Of a stretch of 64,000 nucleotides of DNA, positions 1,815-21,900 are shown piece by piece. Below the pieces are notes generated by a model, which saw only the letters and a program-made list of their open reading frames with translations, searched no databases and had not been told where the DNA came from. Origin of the DNA: Amphiscolops sp. MND2022 (lineage: Eukaryota); NCBI GenBank assembly GCA_964187785.1, contig OZ076420.1, forward strand, positions 2,728,001 to 2,792,000, written 5' to 3'. Position 1 is the first letter of the stretch. Every line of letters starts with the position of its first letter. The translations under genes were made by a program, and so were the position numbers.

Positions 1815-2001
1815 CTACTTGGATTGAGGAGAGTATAGAATTTTGCCGACGTTTCTAGTCTTGGGGATTCTCCGGATCACTTCCCTGAGATTGTGTCTCA
1901 TGTTGTTCACAGCCGCTTCGTCGCCTCTCGCCTCTTTCTGCTTCAGCCGAACCACGTGCTGCACTTTTTTGATCATCGAATCCGAGAATGTCAAGTAATT
2001 G
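1815..2001 (-). CDS. SPG11: SPG11 last exon (13)
   Basis: Acceptor gtgttag|C at 2002, phase 2; reads SNYLTFSDSMIKKVQH...SPQSK*. Confidence 0.65.
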
Positions 2002-5000
2002 CTAACACAACAACATTCGGGGATTACCAATAAATATCCAACATTCAGAAATTTGGTTTTGTACAATCACGGAATTTTTTCTCAAAAAATCGTTTTTTTT
2101 TCATGAGAAAAATACTATTGTGATGAATCGATTCATCATTGACAAAGTTAAATGTGTCGCGTGATCCCTGATAGTATCAGGGATCACGCGACACGTTTAA
2201 CTTGGTCAATGATGAATCGATTTCATCACATCTGATGACGCTCAATTGGTCAGTCGATCAGTATTGGGTCTCATAAGATATTGAGCAGTCAAATGGGCTC
2301 TTTTCTGTCAATCCCCCACCATCTAAATTTTTCTAGGGAAACGTACAAAAAAAATTCAAACTCGCTTTATTAGAAGAGAAATTTTAAAGTTGACTTCTAT
2401 TGGAACAGTTTTTTGTTTGAACAAAACATTTTTCATTCACTTTGAATGTGATTATGTTCATATTTACTGTTTTTTGTGACTCAAAACAGGAAGCTGTTGA
2501 TTTCTTAATCAGAAATACGTGACCTCATAGGCAAAAATAAAAAAGTGTGAACAAAGTTTGTATCTCAATTGTAAACAGTCATCCTGAGAATAAATATAAA
2601 AGAAAAGGAACTTAGTTGTAAGTGTTCTTATTCTATTATTTGCACAACTTTTTTTTCAAAAAATTCAGGTGGTTCTTACAGAAAAGTTCGAAAGCTTTCC
2701 CATAAAAACGACATCTTTCACCAAATATATATAATCGGTTATTCAATTCCCAGACAATTCCGAGTCATTCTAGCTGAGTAAAAAATTACAATCGATTCTA
2801 CATTTAAATACATTGCAAAATATATTGGTCATCCCTGAAAGCGGTGAACAGTTTGAAATCTCCTCCAATGATTACTTTTTGGCACAAAAAGCGAGGCAAC
2901 AAAACGGGCGCTTTGTCGTAAGCTTCCAGAAAGGTCATGATTTGAACAACATGCGATAGCTTGTCTAGGATCTCGAAAAAGGTCACTTCGGGGGCAGTTT
3001 GAAGGTTCATAACTGCAACCGTTTCGGGGAGCAGTTGAATTTGAAGGGCGCACAGTTTGGCTTGTTTCAAACAGAATCGGGCTTCCGAGAACTTTTTGTC
3101 TTGGTTGAAGCAATTATACGCCTCAAAATAGTCTTTAGCAACATCGCCCAACATCTGAGTTGCCTCGGCGGTTCCCATGGTAACTGAGAATTTATACTTG
3201 ACGGTATTGGCCGCGCGTTCCCGAAGAACTTTGGCATACTCCTGAATGAAGTTTAGCTTTTTAAGGTAGACCTTTGATGGAGATGAGAGATGACCCTACT
3301 ACCCTTGTTTTTCGGAAATCACAAATTTTGCAAATTTGTTAAATGTTGAATATCTCTTACAAAAATCTGATAGTAAAATCTAGAATTTTGCAAAAGATGT
3401 GAATTTTTTCAACTAGGGTATAATCATTTACTGTATAATTTATTATAGCTTTTGCTATTAATTAATAAATAGTATTCTATTATAGATCCTATTTTTTGCC
3501 AATAGTATGATTATAGCTTCAATCCTTGCGCCCATCTAGGGTAGTCAGCTAGAGAAAAGTTGATTTTTTGAAAAAAAACGAAACATTAAAGACCATGAAT
3601 TAATTCTTATAACATTCAACGATGAGTCGAGTTTTCAAATTTCGAGGCAAAATTCTCATTCTTCTATTCCATCATCTCAAAAATAAATCATTATTATTGA
3701 CTTATATTTTCGTTTAAATATTTCTTTCGGTAACCCTGTAATAGGCTACAATAGAATTTCGAGCTATGGTCATCTCTGACTTTTGACTGCAAAGTTTCTT
3801 TCTGCTGTAGCAAGTGGGGCAAAATGAAGATTCGCAGCTCCAGCGCCGTTTCGGGATGGTTGTCTATGAAATCTAGCAAACATTTTCTATGTGACAAGAG
3901 TTGCACTACTTCTATACACAATACTCTATCGTGTGTCAGACATTTCAAGCAATGCACCGCTAGGTTGTAGTCGAAATGGGATCTCAAAACGGCCGTTAGG
4001 TTCGTGGAAATGGCTTCGAATTTTTTGACAGTACTCAGATGGAATGTTTTGCCCAAAAGTTCCAGAACATGGTTCATTAAACTCACAGCCGCGTAGTACT
4101 GTTGGGATTTGAGGAGGTCGAAAGACAAGCGACACATTTTCTCCATCAGCATCTGTTTGTCGGGCATGAGTTGAAGCAGGTTGTTGAACTTGGGAGTTGA
4201 TCAGGGTTGGAAAAAAGTTTTTATTGAAAAACAGAGCCGCATGTGCGGTAACATTAGAGTGCATAGGCAAGCTTACTTTGCTCAAAGCGCAACTTTGAGT
4301 TTTCAATACCTCGGATTCCACGACCATGCCTTTAACCGTGCAAACATGGCAAATTACGTCAATTACGGCACAGAATTTTGTGTGTCCCGAATTCCACGAC
4401 AAGCAGCAAAATAGCTTGCCTATGCACTGTAATGAAAGAAGTCGGAAACGGGTTAAAATATTGAAAAACAATGCTACTTTGTCATTTCGTCATTTTTGGC
4501 TATGTTTCTCAGATCCCAGAAATACGATTTTGATGCCATAACTGAAAAAAAAATCGTTCGAATCGCACGGTCAGTTTTTGAGAAAATCAAAAAAGTATAT
4601 TTTTGGACTAATTTTGGCTGTTTCTCAGATCCCAGTCATACAATTTTAATGCCAATGCGCACGCAAAGAATGACATTCAGAAAGAATGACATTCAGAAAG
4701 GACATTCTGCTGGTCCAATATTGATCATTTAGTTGAAATGTGGTACAAATGGATCAGAGGAATAATACGAGAAACAACCCCTCTTAGAACTAAACATCGA
4801 TCAAACCTTCCCCCATGGGTAACGTCTTCAACGTCGCACCTTATTAAGAAACTTAACACTGCGAAAAAACAGAATAGCAAATCAAAAATAGAAAAACTTG
4901 AAAAAGTTGTCTCACTGGCCCTGGTCAATGACCAAAAATCCTATGAAGAACATCTTTCAGATGGCAGAAATACCAACCGGTTGTTTAAGTTTTATCGCCA

Positions 5001-12900: not shown

Positions 12901-15900
12901 TCTGGATCTCAAGTAGACAGTGGATTCGCCCATCATGATCATGAGAGCCACGGCGGAGGCGACAATCACCGAATTCTCAACGTTCTTGCATGCAATGCTG
13001 CGGATGTTGTCAATGCAACGGGACCTGTATCAAAAGGGGATTGTTGTGCAGAGTCGAATTATGTAAGATCGAATTGTGACTTGACTTTATCAAAGATCGA
13101 AAGAAGTGAAAATTTCATTCATATTATACCATTGCTATAATCCCGATAAAATTCGATTCTAAATTATTCGACCCTGGAAATTACAGTTGCAATTTTCGAT
13201 TCTGAATAATTCGACTCCGGTGAGGCAACTCATTAAGAAGTTATCAAACATTTTAAATCAAGGAGGTTCCACAGTTATAAGTTTGTTCTCAAAAAAGCGA
13301 CCGATATAATATAGTAGCATTATATACTGTTATAGTTGAAAATCAGCAATTCTGACTTTGCGGAAACAAGCCACGTAGAGACAGTGGAAAAAAGCAAAAA
13401 AAACTGTCCTTGCCCTCAATTTATAGAGAAATTACCAGTTATTTTTTCGTGAAAATAGCGGCATTCCACGGAAAGAAGCGACTTGCTTTGAAAAAGCGAC
13501 CCAAAGCGATAATTCGCTTTAACGCGACCCAAGTGGTCACCATGTGTAAGTCAAATAATGGCAGTTAATTGGTAATTTTTTCGGCCAAAAGCTGATAAAT
13601 TTCAATACATTTTGTTCAAAAATTTCGCCCAGCAACTAATTCTTTGCTTAGATGTTTGGTTAATGTCAAGAAAATACTAGAACCATGTTTCTTATGTCCC
13701 AGGTTTCGTATTTTTCTCAACGCGGAAACACTTTTTATTCTGGAAATTTCTTGCTCCAACAAAAGAATTTGATATAGATGTAAATACTTGAAGGATTGTC
13801 TCCACGGCTGTTTTGACATGTCAATCGAAATTATAACCTGGTTTTTGATATTTTTGAATCAAAATAGCAACATTTCACACCTAGAACAAGTTGAAATTGC
13901 CATCATAAAATATAAGCAGCTTTCACCTTGCAGTCAATATAAAAGATATAATTATGTCGACATCTTATACGAATGAATAGTTTATTTACTGATATAACTT
14001 TACATTGCAAAATGTCAACTAAATAAACGTCAAAAGAACGAAAAAAGAGCTTTCCAGCTCGACATTGAAGTTTTCGCCCTGAACGAACATTTATATAATT
14101 TGTTAGACCAAAATTTCAACGCAAACGATGTCGACATAATGGTATTTGAACCTTGTTTCCATCCCGTGGTCGCTGGAGGGAAATAAGAAACATGGCCCAA
14201 ATATGATTGTCAAATTTCATTGGTAACTAATTCATCAGTCATCGTCTGTAATTATTTATTGATATCCATCCAAAAAAATCCATTTTAATGTTGAAATAAC
14301 AAATAGAAACAACACAATAAACTCTCATTTGAGTAGGAGACAAAATCTGACACCCAATTCATTGCAACTAATTGGATGCAAAAAATGCCAATTAAACGAT
14401 TGGAAGTTACTTGCCAATTATAATGATTTCAATTATGTGCAATTCTGGTGCAATTAATACTAAGATCAGCCCCCTTTCTTTTCTTTGGACGATCAATAAA
14501 ATAGAGATACGAAGACCTATTTTATAAATCCTCCTCCACTTGCTGATGCTTTCAAAAATTGTTTCTATGGGACCGTTACTGACATTAAGGAGGCTCTGCA
14601 GTTTGCAGCGTTTTGACATTTTTACCTTCTAATTTTTTTCATTTATCTTTACCGACACGCCCTCTCTGTATTATGGGCACGTACAAGCTAATAAACAAAA
14701 CTAATTCGTGGTTGCATTACGCACGGTCCTATTAAGTTCATAGAGAAAATTATAAGTTAAAGAAAAGTTATGTTCAATTAATTTAGAACTCAATTAACTT
14801 TAGAGAAAAGATGCCTTGCCTGTATCTGCGTTTGTGGGATTCCTCAAGACTGCTCCAGTGTGCGAGTATCATCTGGAATGCAAATGCCGGTCTTCCGTGC
14901 ATCAGGTAGTGCTGGTAACTGGGCAGACAATCCAGACCTGGAACACCCCAAAAATTTGATTTATTATGCTGTTATCATTTTCCGCCCACATATAATGGGG
15001 GAGGAGAATCATAATCTGTGTTGCTTTTTTCCCCAAATTCTGCCAAATCTCCACGATCTTCATCCACTACTTGACTATTTTAGTTACCAGTAACCAAAAT
15101 AGTCAAGTAACTAAAATAGTCAGGTAGTTACTAGTAGTTTAGTACTAGCGACTGAAATAGTCAAGTAACTAAAATAGTCAACTATGAAGGCGGAAATGTC
15201 CGGTGCTTAGCGGGCGTCTTGTATCATAATACATAGTGATGGTAAAACTTACGCAGTAAAAACAAAATCAACTGGTTAAACCAGAGTTTTCATTGACGAA
15301 ATTAAACCAGTGATCAAAGAAGATGTCCGAAACTAACCTGGAAGAGCTTAAACAGTCACATTTTATTGAAAATTATCGTCCAGGATCACTCACTAAAAAT
15401 GGCTTTACAATGCCCTCGGATTGAAAAACAAACCGTGAACGGCATAAGTCGGTGCCACGCTTCTGATACATACTAATCAAACGAAAATTCGAATTATACG
15501 GATACGAACTAACCGGAGCTGACTGTATTACAAAGCAGAGTTTTGACATCGCTAATTTTTTTCGCTAACCGCTAAACCGCCAATTTTAAATTCCCTATTT
15601 CGCTGAAACATTTTTCTTGAAACTATTAAATGTTTAACTTCAAAAAGTACTTAATCCAGTTTTTGCCAGAAAAAAAAGACTTTTTGATACTGTGTGGGTT
15701 TTACAAGTGAAAGAGTTGGATTTTTCGATATTCATTGTGAAACTCCTTGATTTTCAAAAAAAAGAATTTGGACAATCTATTAGTTGCCACCAATTTAAAT
15801 CGCTTTTAAAATCGCTGAAACTTCGCTGAATCCGGTGTGCGATCTTGATGGAAAACAACACAGTACCGTCTAAAGTCGGCGCCCCACTTGAAACTCAGAA

Positions 15901-18900
15901 AGCGCACAGCCTCATAGAAATGTTCGGGTGGCTTTCAAAACATTTTCATAACTTTCACAGTGGCAAAAAAAGTATCAGAAAAAGCGACCTGTTGCCTCAA
16001 AAAACGACTTTGTGTGGATGAAAAAAAACACCCAAATTGATGAAAAAGTCGCAGTGTCGGAAACCCAAAACAAGAATCCCTTGGAAAAAGGGTCGTTTAT
16101 CAGTGAAATTTTAAAAGAAATAAAAGGATTATTTTGGATTGCAGTTGTAAAATCTTGCGTGGAGGTTTGTTATTTTTATCTTAGAGATAGATCTGATAAT
16201 TATTTTTCTTTATGAGGAAGATTTGTTACAGAAACGATTTTATTGTTCTTCTCGAAGTTACAAAGTATAGTAAAAATATCACAAAACTAACTGGTTGATC
16301 CATTTTCCATGACGTCATCAAAGTTGGGATAAGTGGCAGTTGAGGGCGCGTTGATCTCGCGAAACTTGTTTTTCGTCTGCCACAAAAACAGGGTGTCACA
16401 TCTCAAGTCAGAATTGCCCTCCAGCAAGTCGTAAACCGTCGAGGTTATAACTTTGGGGTAGTTACTAGTCCAATCAGGGATGAGAATTTATTGTAAACGT
16501 AATTTTTAGACATTTGTGAGAAATGTGCCGAGATGTCTCGTATTGCTAATAAAAATTCCTATAGAAAAATATGCATTTCTGAGAAACGTTTAAAATATTG
16601 TCAACAATTTTGACGCCTTAAAGACAAAAACTTACGTTTAACTCGCTAAAGATGCATCCTATTATAAATTGGAACACCGATATTTTCGATGAAGATACTG
16701 AATAAATTTTGTTTGAAATACGTTTTTTCGCATTTTTTTCCATTTTTTACGCAATTTTTGAGGTAAATTTATTGCGCAACTTTTCAATATTTTAACGCAA
16801 TAAATTCTCATCCCTGGTCATAATGGAATGTATCTTCTCAAACGGCTTCGATGCTTCTATGCACTTTGGATTGAAGAGTTCCTTCGTTTCCGAATCCACA
16901 AGACCCCAGAAAACCAGAAGTGCCAGGTCACTCAAGTTTCCCGTTTCGTTCACGTTTTGTTCGTTCCACAGTTTTTTGGAGTCTATGAACCGCTGACCCC
17001 AGTTTTTAACATCACCACGGGACGCTAATGACGTCATGAAAATATTCACAACTTGACGCACTTTGAGATCTAGGTTCTGTTCATTGAGGTTCAACACGAA
17101 AACGTCTATCAGCGGAAGTAGCGAAAGGAGACCATCTTCGTGAATAAGTTCATTACCGGACAAGAATTTGCAAAGTTCCAATAAACTGCTGTTTTTTCCT
17201 TCCGCTTCCATAAAAAGTCGACGGTTATGTATGTTTGAAAAACGAAGGTTCTGAAACGTCTCCGAAAACTTGAATTTATCCGTCAAGTAAATACTGTCCA
17301 ACACTTCAAATATCAGTTCTCTGAACTCAGATGTCATTGTTATGTCGAAGACTTGTTGAAAATCCAAATCTGAGCAGCTAATCACTTCTTCAAGCGAAGA
17401 GCTGAGACCAAACTTCAGCGCGAAAACGAAGTCTTGGAAGGAATTGAGGTTGTTTTTGGAGTAACTCAAGGCAGATTTGAAGTCTAGAAACGCTTCAGCG
17501 GACATTCGGGACAAACTGCTGATTGAAAAACTGTACATTCCCAATTGGGGGTCTTGAAACAAGTTGAGATTTCCGTCATCAACTGCATTTTTGACCGCTT
17601 CTATCTTTTCGGAATCGCCGTTGATTTGACCTTGAAGAACAGTTTCAAGAACCGGAACTTTGAAGGATCTTTGCTGCAGGCGTGAAATGATTTCATTTGG
17701 GTTTAGATCAACTTTCCGGAGACAAAACACAATGTCGTCTTGATGGGAGTTTTTGAATAACATCTCAGCTGCCGTTTTACAGGCCGCTTTTTGGGACGAG
17801 AAAGCATCGTAGCTGAAAGCTGCCAGATTACTCATTGATACCCGGCTAGCTCGGTCCCTTTGTCAACAATGTTACACAAGTTTTGAAATGTTGCTCAAAA
17901 ATGGTCAACTTGAGATTCAGTGGATTAACAAACCGCTTTTTCATCAATCAATGTTTGTTTTGACCGAATTCTTGTCGAACGAGACAGGAACGTCTCAAGT
18001 CGACGCTGAACTCAAAGTTCAAAAAGCGCAAAGTTTTCAAAATATGCTAAGGACGTCTGATTTCAGACGAAAAATGAGAATTTTGAAACTGTCTCATAGT
18101 GCCGAAAAACGCAAAAGAGGAGAAGGACCCTTTTTGTCATCGAATCTTGAGAGAAAGGTCACTGTAAGAGTTGAGTATTTTTTGTTTCACAGAAATCGCC
18201 GACTAAAAAACAGCATTTCTAAGGTTCTTTATTGCTTTATTATTCCTAAATTACTAGCCAATGGGCGAAATACGTCCATGTACGCATTTTCATTCGAAGT
18301 ATTTTCATTTTCCTAGAGAAACTCTTACGGATAGTTTAATACATGCTAGTACTTCAGTATTACCTGGAAAGCAACTGAAAAAGTCCAGATAAGCTAAGCA
18401 TTCATTCTCGAAGATTCAGACTTCTAACGGAAGAACTTTTCTACAAATCTTCATTGTTTTTCTCAATATTTGAGAAGTTAAACTTGAACAACTTCTAGAC
18501 GTGTAACAGTGCCTCTTGTCTGAAACATCTTCTTGAATCGACTGGTTGAGAAGCGATTGTTTAGATTGGATTTTTTCCATAAACCCGATTCCGCTTCTCA
18601 GGCGTCTCAGACAATGCCCAACTTCAGCCAGAACATCTTTCCAGTTGAAATTCGCTCTGCTTTTCTCGTTGAGACACTTGAACACCGTTATAAGATGCTT
18701 CAAAAACATACAAAGAAGCGCCTTGGTTTCAGGGTTCGTCCCCACAACATTCGATCGACAAACTTCGTTGCAAATTTGATTTATGGCCGAGAGGTAATTG
18801 TTGGAAATTTCTTCCGAATCCAGATCGAAACTGTTATGGGACCATGCCATCTATTTGCCCCAAACTGCTTGGGGATAAGACACAAGGTACAAATACCATT

Positions 18901-21900
18901 ATGTCGACATCGTTTGCGTTGAAATTTTGGTCCAATAAAATAATGTCGACACAATCCTATCCATTACATTGACTGTCAGTTAAAAGTTGCTCATTAGATT
19001 TTATAGCGGACAAAATTTGCTCTGAAATAGGGGGCCTTTTATACGATTTTAGCTTGTTCCAAACGTGAATTTCTGCTATTTTTGGATAATACAGTAAACC
19101 CTCGATTATTCGCCAACTTTGGTCATCCGCCACAAATCTACCGGGACATTTTGCTATAACACCCGTTTCTAAGTTCCCTTGATTAACCGCCACTCTCACT
19201 TATCCGCCATAATTCTGGCTGGACCGATAGTGGCGGATAATCGAGGGTTTACTGTAATATCAAAAAATGAGGGTAATTTTTTGCCTGAAGTGTCAAAACA
19301 GTTGTAGAGACAATCCTCTAAGTATTTACTTTCATATAATATTCTCTTACTCGTGAAATATATTTATTCAAGAACAAAATGTGCTTTCGTGTTGGGGGGA
19401 TATTCCCAACAAGGTGTACCTAAGGGGGGGGGGTTTGATGATATGGTCCCTGTTGTGCTCTTCGAAGTAAATTAGCCAGCGGTCCAAGAAGTAGCCAATC
19501 AGATCGTTTTGAGTGTCGAGAACGTTTTTGGGTAATTTGTATCCAGGTAACCCGGCTTTGGTTTCACTGTTCAAGTCGGTGAATCTATCCAAGGCGGATA
19601 TTCCAGAAAAGTTGACAATCTTTTCCAGCAAAGTAGCCGAAGCGACGCCTGATATGACTATCTTGATTTTACCCCTTTCCACAATGGCAATACCCTGGAT
19701 CAATAGTGTACATTTTTAAGCAATTCAGGATTGAAACGAAGTTGGAATTTTGAAAAAAAAATAGATCTTTAATTCTGATAACTTTTGTAATTAAAAAGGT
19801 AAAGAGGATTCCAAAAATAAGCAACACTTATAGAAAAAAAACTCTGATGATAGAACTCTCCAATTTTTTTTTCGCTAACTTAATTATATCATTGAGGTTC
19901 AAACACGAATCACCTAGCAATCGCAAAAAGCTGGTAATGGAACAAGCCGGGAACGTTCTGCAAAAGAACACAGGTGCTGAATATGCTCAAAGGCCGTTTC
20001 GAAAAATTCTGAAAACTTTCAAAAAATCTTAAGGTGTCCCGTCAGGCTCGAATAAAACATTTACTTAACTGGAAAGGTCAAGCAAGACAAAAGGACAACC
20101 TTTAGTTGTTTTCTTAATCAAAGTGGAAAACCATTTTCATCACTTCGACCGACTAATTGAAAAAAAATCTACCAAAAGGGACGAAAAGTCATCACTATAA
20201 CAGTATAATTCGAAAAAAACGCAACACAGATAATGATTTCTTTGGCATGTGAATGAATGTAGACAAGAGCGAGGCAGACACCTGGACTGAAGGACAAGGC
20301 ACCGGAATCTGATCAGCCTGCAAGCCAATTTGTCTGACACACGAGAAGTTCTCTCCGTCCAAGATGACCACTTTCTCCCGGTTCCACAGGTACACACAGT
20401 TCTCGAACACCACGCAATTCTGCACATTCTCCAGCGCCACCGAAGTCTCGCTCCATTTCGCTGTGCTGAGGTGGTCTCTGTCTGTTTAAAAATCAGGATG
20501 GGTAATTGTGGTAGACTTGTAATTTATCATTACCCTAATGCCGAATTGCAAAAATTTTTCCGAAAAATCGTACCATGACAAAAAAAACAATGGACCCTTT
20601 CGACTTGAAAATGCCTTTTCTTATTCATAATATTAAAGAAAGGGCGAAATCAATTTTTGAAAAAGCTCACAGTTCCGAAAATAACCTATTAGGTTCCGAA
20701 ACAAAACTTTATTTAATCCGAATGAGTACCGTATTTCTTCGAATACAGGCCGCCGGTTGTAAGTTTTTTCCGTAAAGATTTCGCGGCCTACATCCGAAGA
20801 AATATGGTAAGCTACGACTTTCAAGATGAAATTTACAAGCTTAATGCGGCTTCTAATCGGGGGCGACTTCTATTCTAGAGGTGTACCGGACAGCAAGTCC
20901 GGTCCGGTATTCGGCCGGATTTCAGGAAAATGTCCTGTCCGGTATCCGGCAGCCCTTTTTACAATGTCCGGCCGGATATTATCTTAACATAATAATCTTA
21001 AATAGGAATATCTAACTTAAAAAAAGTGTATGTGCATCAAAATATTGAATTTGTGATTGTGAATCAAAATTCATTAAGTTATGGCGGAGGGAAAATTTTT
21101 CACCGTTCTGTGGTAAAAGCCTGCTTAGTTTTTCGTAATCATCATTGCCCAATTCAGAAAACAGCCCTCCATCGCTTACAATTGAGGACAATGTCCGGTC
21201 CGGCCGGTATCCAGCTTCAATCAGTCCTGTCCGGTTGTCCGGCCGGACGGAAACTTTCCTGTCCGGTGCACCTCTATTCTATTCGAAGAAGTACCGTGAT
21301 GTAACATGAGAAACATGATTAGATTATGTAATTTACACATGTACCTGCTAACGCAGAAGCGTGAGAAAACGCCATATTGAAAAGATACGAGTCAGAATAC
21401 AGTTACGCCAATTCACTTGCTTTTGCCAATTCTATTTCTTTTGCCACCTCGTAGTAAGCTATACCAATAACTCACTGTTGTTTCAAAGATTTAGAAGCTG
21501 AACCCTCCTACAGTTTACTTGAACCAAGAGTTTCACAAACGCTTTTTTCAGAGCGCTCAAGCGGCTCAACTTTGAGCTGCACAAAAAGTGTAGGGTTATG
21601 CGTCGTAATGTTAGACATGGCTATTTTTTTCGCTAATCGCTAAAGTGGTAAATTCAAAATCGCTAATTCGCTGAAAACTTTTCATCGAATTATTAATTGT
21701 TTGAAATCAAGAATGTTTTCGATATAAACGATAACTTACTTAATTCAAATTTTGCAAGAAAAGCGAATTTTTACAGGGTTTTACAGATGAAGAGTGGGCA
21801 TTTTTCAAATTCATTTTGAACCTCCCGAGTATTTTCGAGGGAATTTTGAATTAGGACAATCTATTAATTGCCGCTAATTTGAATCACTAATAGAATTGCT

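Follow-up and report, generated by a model that had tools for sequence, protein, structure and literature searches.

A lineage-specific intron with a predicted GG donor, likely born from a hAT-type transposon, in the spatacsin gene of an acoel

The stretch of DNA analysed here (64,000 nucleotides, hereafter the window) comes from the acoel Amphiscolops sp. MND2022 (contig OZ076420.1 of assembly GCA_964187785.1) and lies at 2.73 Mb on the contig denoted C12 of the 1.07-Gb assembly; the window is AT-rich animal DNA (35–43% GC). Its minus strand carries a gene for spatacsin (SPG11), the last two coding exons of which flank an intron that, in the best-supported gene model, begins with GG rather than GT. 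The features that define this part of the gene are listed below; here and throughout, a slash within a donor sequence marks the exon–intron boundary.

2835 to 3271, minus strand: penultimate coding exon, ending ...GGDFKLFTAF plus the AG of a split Ser codon
2002 to 2834, minus strand: predicted intron of 833 nt, GG...AG, phase 2, at a lineage-specific position
2002 to 2003, minus strand: acceptor AG, preceded by TGTTGTTGTGTT; no other AG occurs in the 75 nt that precede the conserved start NYLTF
1815 to 2001, minus strand: last coding exon, comprising the third base of the Ser codon, 61 codons and the stop codon TAG (1817–1815)

The penultimate exon (3271–2835) matches the Pfam Spatacsin_C family (PF14649) with an E-value of 2.5e-14 over profile positions 141–276 of 296, and an exhaustive phmmer search with this exon returned five homologues, the closest at 41% identity. 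These comprise a protein of 2,073 residues (denoted P0001; 41%), bryozoan, octopus and limpet spatacsins, and one metagenomic fragment; the Watersipora and Octopus matches are named spatacsin, and the Lottia match is named Spatacsin C-terminal domain-containing protein. The significant matches to both the Pfam family and the spatacsins of other animals identify the gene as a spatacsin orthologue. By tblastn the exon is 41.5% identical to residues 1869–2010 of P0001, and a scan of all junctions of the gene against P0001, in which no constraint was placed on the dinucleotides, locates its upstream acceptor at 3272. P0001 is encoded by a single uninterrupted open reading frame (ORF) of 6,222 nt with no introns, and its C-terminus is therefore free of any splice-model artefact.

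The closest spatacsin homologues, at 41% identity, were located on two contigs of the ENA assembly ERZ25071359 (L001:3001–9222 and L002:3001–9279; coverage approximately 60-fold). Their ORFs of 2,073 and 2,092 codons are uninterrupted, and the animal orthologues checked have many introns.

Downstream of the intron, the frame that opens at 2001 completes the split codon ((AG)C = Ser), continues with NYLTFSDSMIKK and runs for 61 codons to the TAG; in 3% of shuffles such a frame is open by chance. When the last exon was anchored at the C-terminus and compared without gaps to the last 61 residues of P0001, 17/61 residues were identical, a score reached by 0 of 100,000 shuffles. Both exons (2835–3271 and 1815–2001) are present as a single copy in the genome, and this is its sole copy of spatacsin.

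On the minus strand the exon ends ...GGAGGAGATTTCAAACTGTTCACCGCTTTCAG (TTCAG) at 2835 and the intron starts with GGATGACCAATA at 2834–2823; its 3′ end reads ...TGTTGTTGTGTTAG at 2002, such that the predicted join of 2835 to 2001 reads ...GCTTTCAG/CAATTAC.... All of the strings and coordinates given for this strand by the original prediction, which had been made from the letters of the window, were correct. The GG at 2833/2834 shows no variant in contigs of four DNA sequencing runs covering 2547–3311, all four being from one sample; the GG is not a slip of the assembly.

The choice of junction was judged from protein homologues, with splicing inferred from collinearity. From the QEYA motif to the stop codon there are 198 residues both in the window protein built with the GG junction and in P0001; the two align gap-free and end at the same C-terminal residue. 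In a multiple alignment of spatacsin C-termini the GDFxxxxxF spacing is present in the homologues, and the distance from GDF to a downstream L-x-P..I motif is constant in 5/5 very distant homologues; only the GG junction matches it. The original prediction had proposed that a GG junction preserves GDFKLFTAF, and as regards the protein this proposal is supported by the gap-free fit to five homologues and by the C-terminus shared with the intronless P0001, the use of the junction itself being predicted from these comparisons. A profile hidden Markov model was also built from the homologue tails and run both with and without P0001, giving the following scores for the four possible readings:

GG donor at 2834: 134.3 bits with P0001, 83.4 bits without
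GC donor at 2816: 124.6 bits with P0001, 74.4 bits without
read-through to the stop codon at 2804: 118.7 bits with P0001, 73.8 bits without
GT donor at 2849: 118.0 bits with P0001, 72.2 bits without

The ranking is unchanged on removal of P0001, and the lead of the GG junction is 9–16 bits. The upstream, in-phase GT that the original prediction had named as the nearest canonical donor (CT/GTTCAC, 2849/2848) does exist, and is the sole in-phase GT–AG solution. Its use would remove FTAFS, a five-residue deletion in a conserved gap-free block, and gives the lowest profile score of the four (118.0 versus 134.3 bits); the GT apart, its context matches the donor consensus almost nowhere. The homologue alignment thus overturns this GT as the true donor, and we regard its use as the least probable of the alternatives. 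The original prediction had also pointed to an in-frame stop: read-through from the exon gives FRDDQYILQCI followed by TAA at 2806–2804, 10 codons past the donor, so that the insertion might have truncated the gene and left the downstream exon as a decaying relic, or as part of a minor isoform only. This is very unlikely, as the downstream ORF is intact (with the 3% chance expectation given above), significantly resembles the tail of the homologue and stops at the same residue, even though the insert is old enough to hold a nested repeat that is 75–79% identical to its family (described below); moreover, the genome has no other copy of spatacsin.

A third in-phase donor, GC at 2816/2815 (TT/GCAATG), was missed in the original prediction, and we give it a small chance of being the donor that the spliceosome uses, which would count against the GG model. 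It is in phase with the same acceptor, its pairwise score to P0001 is only 7 points below that of the GG junction, and GC–AG introns are an accepted minor class, of which the same gene holds a good example (CAG/GCAAGG at 14819); a further intron of the gene, at 16813, likewise has an in-frame GC 15 nt inside an inserted element. Set against this, the GC donor would leave 18 more bases of the likely transposon in the mRNA, inserting six residues (RDDQYI, with Phe replacing Ser) and breaking the spacing that is invariant among the five homologues; it scores 9–10 bits lower with both profiles, and its context is very poor for U1 (the exon ends in TTT, and T is at +5). Other donor and acceptor pairs (GT at 2811 with AG at 2082; phase-0 pairs with AG at 2116) run into stop codons. 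A U12-type intron was likewise rejected, comparing the donor GGATGACC with the consensus [AG]TATCCTT and finding no TCCTTAAC branch site in the last 60 nt.

The donor, CAG/GGATGA, conforms to the pattern of GG and GA donors verified by RNA in the copepod Eurytemora, where the exon ends in AG and the intron carries A at +3 (PMC5714493). As in that class, the junction restores the frame and the homologous protein. Taken together, the protein comparisons make the GG–AG junction the best-supported gene model, and we consider it quite probable that this is the junction used.

Neither the Lottia nor the Watersipora spatacsin gene has an intron at the position of 2002–2834; the last intron common to those two genes (after ..VDKY and ..VQRF, respectively) is found approximately 16 codons further downstream, and the window gene lacks it. 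Since no intron is present here in Lottia, Watersipora or P0001, the intron is lineage-specific; such a position, not shared with other lineages, is a feature of introners (transposon-born introns). A search of 5.8 billion proteins for ORF fragments of the exon, intended to reach the same intron in a relative, retrieved the ORF of the window itself and nothing else, providing neither an empty site nor a comparison of compensatory changes. Over 1815–3271, compared with the genes of Lottia (L025) and Watersipora (L026), the window gene has two introns at positions that both lack, and turnover is complete there.

The two ends of the intron are complementary to one another. At 2032–2021 (−31 to −20 relative to the first exon base, 2001), TATTGGTAATCC is the complement of GGATGACCAATA at 11 of 12 positions, with one G/A mismatch. 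The pairing lengthens when the last three exon bases are included, yielding a 13/15 inverted repeat (CAGGGATGACCAATA versus CGGGGATTACCAATA read on the opposite strand) with the following arms:

2823 to 2837, minus strand: 5′ terminal inverted repeat CAGGGATGACCAATA, containing the donor CAG/GG, with 3 nt exonic
2018 to 2032, minus strand: 3′ terminal inverted repeat TATTGGTAATCCCCG, matching the 5′ arm at 13/15 positions; 16 nt separate its end from the acceptor, and it overlaps the likely branch-site zone

The helix formed by these arms closes the intron in both the minimum free energy (MFE) and centroid folds of the whole intron. When 32-nt 5′ segments were compared with 60-nt 3′ segments in 20,000 random pairs from the window, 0.57% of the pairs reached a complementarity of 11/12 or more, and the duplex energy of −23.1 kcal/mol was reached by 0.9% of 3,000 window controls. 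The 11/12 pairing of the donor with the region −31 to −20, which had drawn attention to this intron, is thus real and lies in the top 1% of window controls; it is significant but not overwhelming when taken alone, because many introns had been screened to find it. The intron accordingly has the terminal inverted repeats (TIRs) at its ends that are characteristic of introners (13/15; chance 0.6–0.9% in window controls).

A meaning of the pairing as a clasp tied to the odd donor, which the original prediction implied, is not supported in that form. The end-to-end duplex falls in the top 3% of controls for 5/7 SPG11 introns tested, with GT or GG donors alike; pairing equally strong as that of the GG intron is found in the GT–AG introns 8223–4189 (−25.8 kcal/mol) and 3780–3272 (−20.2 kcal/mol), and the motif itself is a transposon terminus found genome-wide. 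The same duplex test detected no end pairing in the GC–AG intron at 14819. As pairing is found in GT and GG introns alike, it tracks transposon origin and not the unusual donor. The pairing of the donor with the 3′ end is thus likely a pair of terminal inverted repeats, best explained as the remains of hAT-type ends.

The transposon character of this terminus is evident from its distribution in the genome. The 15-mer CAGGGATGACCAATA, allowing at most 1 mismatch, has 199 matches (15 of them exact), 7-fold more than the 28 matches of a reversed control, and 4/12 exact copies have an inverted partner within 1.5 kb, compared with approximately 0.2 expected by chance. Elsewhere in the genome CAGGGATGACCAATA forms the terminus of small elements flanked by 8-bp target-site duplications (TSDs), the hallmark of hAT transposons. 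One such element, of 507 bp (L047), has the same terminus and a perfect 8-bp duplication (CTTGGTAG); at a second locus (L042), which has a 6/8 duplication, the GGTAATCCC variant carried by the 3′ arm of the intron is found at the 3′ end of a TSD-flanked element. The duplication is 7/8 in a copy (L006) of a family of miniature inverted-repeat transposable elements (MITEs), and is eroded in the intron at 2002–2834. The terminus starts with CAGGG, in keeping with hAT TIRs, which start CAG or TAG. The genome holds at least 150 matches over the cut-off to the hAT transposase domain PF05699, some of them in open frames of 600–700 aa; these matches attest to the presence of hAT transposases in the genome, no single one being tied to the CAGGGATGACCAATA terminus.

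Two further features lie inside the intron:

2283 to 2674, minus strand: nested high-copy repeat (intron nt 161–552), with 3,534 first-look candidates and copies 75–79% identical
2119 to 2230, no strand assigned: near-perfect palindrome, in which two CAGGGATCAC-type ends point towards each other, 7 nt apart

The copies to which searches of the genome with the whole intron, its 5′ end or its 3′ end led were of the nested internal repeat only, and it is at this repeat only that read depth rises, up to thousands-fold. The identity of the repeat to its family (75–79%) indicates that the insert is old. We estimate that approximately 3.6 changes would be expected in the 30 bases of the two arms over the age of the nested repeat, and two are observed, which fits neutral decay, so that selection for pairing need not be invoked. 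Nonetheless, the helix may be more than a relic of a transposon, namely a selected and functional structure that presents a weak GG donor near the branch site and acceptor and thereby permits non-GT donors in this lineage (structure-assisted splicing); an origin from a transposon would not conflict with this. Both the MFE and the centroid fold contain the helix with 5 more pairs reaching into the exon, in energy it ranks among the top 1% of controls, the 3′ arm spans the distance at which branch sites usually lie (−31 to −15), and end pairing that joins intron ends has been described for non-conventional euglenid introns and MITE-derived introns (PMC11282704). The equally strong pairing in GT–AG introns of the same gene, its lack in the GC–AG intron at 14819 and the fit of the two arm changes from the motif to neutral decay all argue the other way, and we consider a selected role possible but doubtful.

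The palindrome at 2119–2230 matches its own inverse at 94% and dominates the fold z-score of −11 obtained for the intron. It spans approximately 110 nt, is single copy in the genome, and has its transposon ends arranged ends-in and not ends-out.

A second intron of the same gene, 16813–16465 (minus strand), also needs a CAG/GGATGA start, and is a cleaner case of a transposon-born CAG/GG intron than 2002–2834. It has a perfect 19-bp TIR (CAGGGATGAGAATTTATTG) and an 8-bp TSD, and belongs to a MITE family of at least 50 copies at approximately 87% identity, other members of which start at CAGGGATGAG with 8-bp TSDs (for example GTGATAAC and GTGATGAC in L006). Splicing as CAG/GG...TAG/, with the TAG located 3 nt past the second copy of the TSD, restores the pre-insertion ...IMTSNYP exactly. 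The occurrence of many genomic copies, some of them introns of other genes, is a feature of introners that is seen for 16813–16465 and is lacking for 2002–2834.

The neighbouring intron 3780–3272 (GT–AG, minus strand) begins 2 nt ahead of CAGAGATGACC, which is the terminus of a high-copy family with 1,098 first-look candidates. A direct repeat (TCAAAAGT and TCAAAGGT) spans its donor and acceptor, indicating that the duplicated target supplies both splice sites, which is the classical introner geometry. A possible third GG case in SPG11, the intron 19449–18831, was set aside as ambiguous; the homologue region is weakly conserved at this point, and an in-frame GT at 19419 (TAG/GTACAC) and a GC at 19458 score about equally.

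Two other introns of the gene, both on the minus strand, show related arrangements. The intron 14819–13025 is of the GC–AG type (ATACAG/GCAAGG), and GATACAG(G), 7–8 nt, occurs at both of its junctions in the manner of a target duplication. In the 4-kb intron 8223–4189 the donor ATCAGG/GTTGG can pair without mismatch over 11 nt with CCAACCCTGAT, which occupies −21 to −11 relative to the acceptor; the donor region is another CAGGG-type terminus, which here yields a canonical GT.

The best explanation of these observations would be that the acoel's only spatacsin gene contains a lineage-specific spliceosomal intron with a GG donor that was born from a hAT transposon. We hold the transposon origin of 2002–2834 to be likely, though not proven. 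The complete account is moderately probable, and is held less firmly than the GG junction because it also requires that origin. In the outlined mechanism, a non-autonomous hAT-type transposon, with CAGGGATGACCAATA at one end and its 13/15 inverted copy at the other, would have inserted into the sequence coding for the Spatacsin_C domain. The first bases of the element, CAG/GGA, would then act as a 5′ splice site for U1 despite the mismatch at +2, with the branch site within or close to the 3′ arm; the acceptor would be a host AG located 16 nt past the other end of the element. Splicing would keep three bases of the element (CAG) and restore the frame, giving GDFKLFTAF-S-NYLTF at the ancestral spacing. 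The terminal inverted repeat may help to bring the splice sites together; that it is required for splicing is not implied.

Several observations weigh against this account. All four sequencing runs over the region are genomic, covering exons and intron alike (the intron at approximately 30–75-fold); none of the joints 2835/2001, 2850/2001 and 2817/2001 was found in these genomic-DNA runs, a result that is uninformative on splicing. An insertion into an exon makes the ancestral-looking junction collinear by construction, and the protein evidence consequently locates the insert more firmly than it does the donor used. The donor CAG/GGAUGA matches the U1 consensus at 6/9 positions (−3 to +1, +3 and +5), with G in place of U at +2. 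At least 21 U1 small nuclear RNA genes, on C12 and elsewhere (L051–L062), exceed the Rfam cut-off, and many form a cluster at 22–25 Mb of C12; among the 12 best, no variant that would pair with G at +2 was found, the 5′ ends being ATACTTACCTG or unrelated variants. As the 5′ end is canonical or near-canonical in these 12 genes, the +2 mismatch is uncompensated. With regard to the origin of the insert, each end of the intron (171 nt and 131 nt) occurs just once in the genome, and blastn comparison of these ends with 12 loci that have the same terminus found nothing shared beyond approximately 24 nt; similarity stops at the TIR, and membership of the family thus rests on approximately 15 nt. The expected 8-bp target duplication is matched at only 4/8 positions (ACCGCTTT versus AATGTTGT), and the 3′ flank is 16 nt, compared with the 11 nt predicted by the clean geometry of the 16813 intron.

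A broader scenario joins these elements: most of the ancestral introns would have disappeared from acoels (the closest homologue of spatacsin is intronless), hAT-type MITEs would have repopulated the genes of this lineage, the terminus CAG/GG(A or G) would provide a 5′ splice site that lacks GT, and the spliceosome would need the TIR helix in order to accept G, A or C at +2. Such a splicing signal, encoded by a transposon and assisted by structure, would then operate in an animal. We consider this combination rather unlikely.

Introners, or transposon-born introns, are reportedly the subject of work by Huff and colleagues in 2016. The spatacsin intron resembles the introners surveyed more recently (PMC9860276, PMC12130899, PMC11282704) in that a short, non-autonomous TIR transposon in coding sequence, at a lineage-specific position, would be removed as an intron. 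Introners take one splice site from the element and the second from the host or from duplicated sequence, as proposed here, and the neighbouring SPG11 introns display the textbook geometry. It differs in that the donor inside the element is GG and not GT, and in that this particular intron has no recognisable sister copies. The hAT superfamily is not named in these three papers, and acoels are not mentioned in two of the surveys (PMC9860276, PMC12130899).

The GA/GG introns of Eurytemora affinis (Robertson 2017, PMC5714493) likewise have the GG start, an obligatory AG at the end of the exon, A at +3 and an AG acceptor; they are proven by RNA-seq and seem to be recent acquisitions, and the paper connects them neither with transposon ends nor with end pairing. 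In the acoel, which belongs to another phylum, the link to a transposon terminus is clear, whereas the junction is deduced from sequence. A further parallel is offered by Fritillaria borealis (Henriet et al. 2019, cited through PMC11282704; bioRxiv 10.1101/2025.08.15.670264), for which non-canonical introns at non-conserved positions, probably derived from MITEs, are described, together with a relaxed spliceosome. Both ends of these introns are non-canonical (AG–AC, AG–AT) and most of its introns are of this kind; in the spatacsin intron only the donor +2 position deviates, the acceptor is AG and the 5′ end of U1 is canonical.

Insertions of the maize hAT elements Ac/Ds are spliced from host transcripts; these are recent mutant alleles with leaky, imperfect splicing, in contrast to the spatacsin insert, which is old and fixed in the sample and seems to yield the ancestral frame. 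The terminus described here can presumably be likened to the Ac end, which begins with CAGGGATGA and supplies splice signals; a literature check of this string returned unrelated primer matches only. With its GG donor in a hAT-type terminus, AG acceptor and acoel host, the spatacsin intron is identical to none of the systems compared. An acoel genome paper, that of Praesagittifera naikaiensis, reports having found no introns that consist of transposons alone, and transposon-born introns therefore seem to be unreported for acoels.

Should the GG junction be confirmed by RNA, this locus would document the birth of an intron from hAT transposons in a bilaterian animal, with the end of the transposon itself serving as the GG donor. 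It would connect transposon-born introns with GG/GA donors, two published oddities so far discussed apart from one another, and would offer a natural system in which to study how strictly position +2 of the 5′ splice site is held. Gene predictors that allow only GT or GC donors would mis-model this genome; in the present gene, five conserved residues would be lost or the protein would be truncated.

The assembly also contains a mitochondrial contig (C1929; 14,704 nt; L063–L065), on which COX1 has 11 in-frame TGA codons. ND3 on this contig is 79% identical to that of the convolutid acoel Heterochaerus australis, its sole named match, and one ENA protein is 98% identical.

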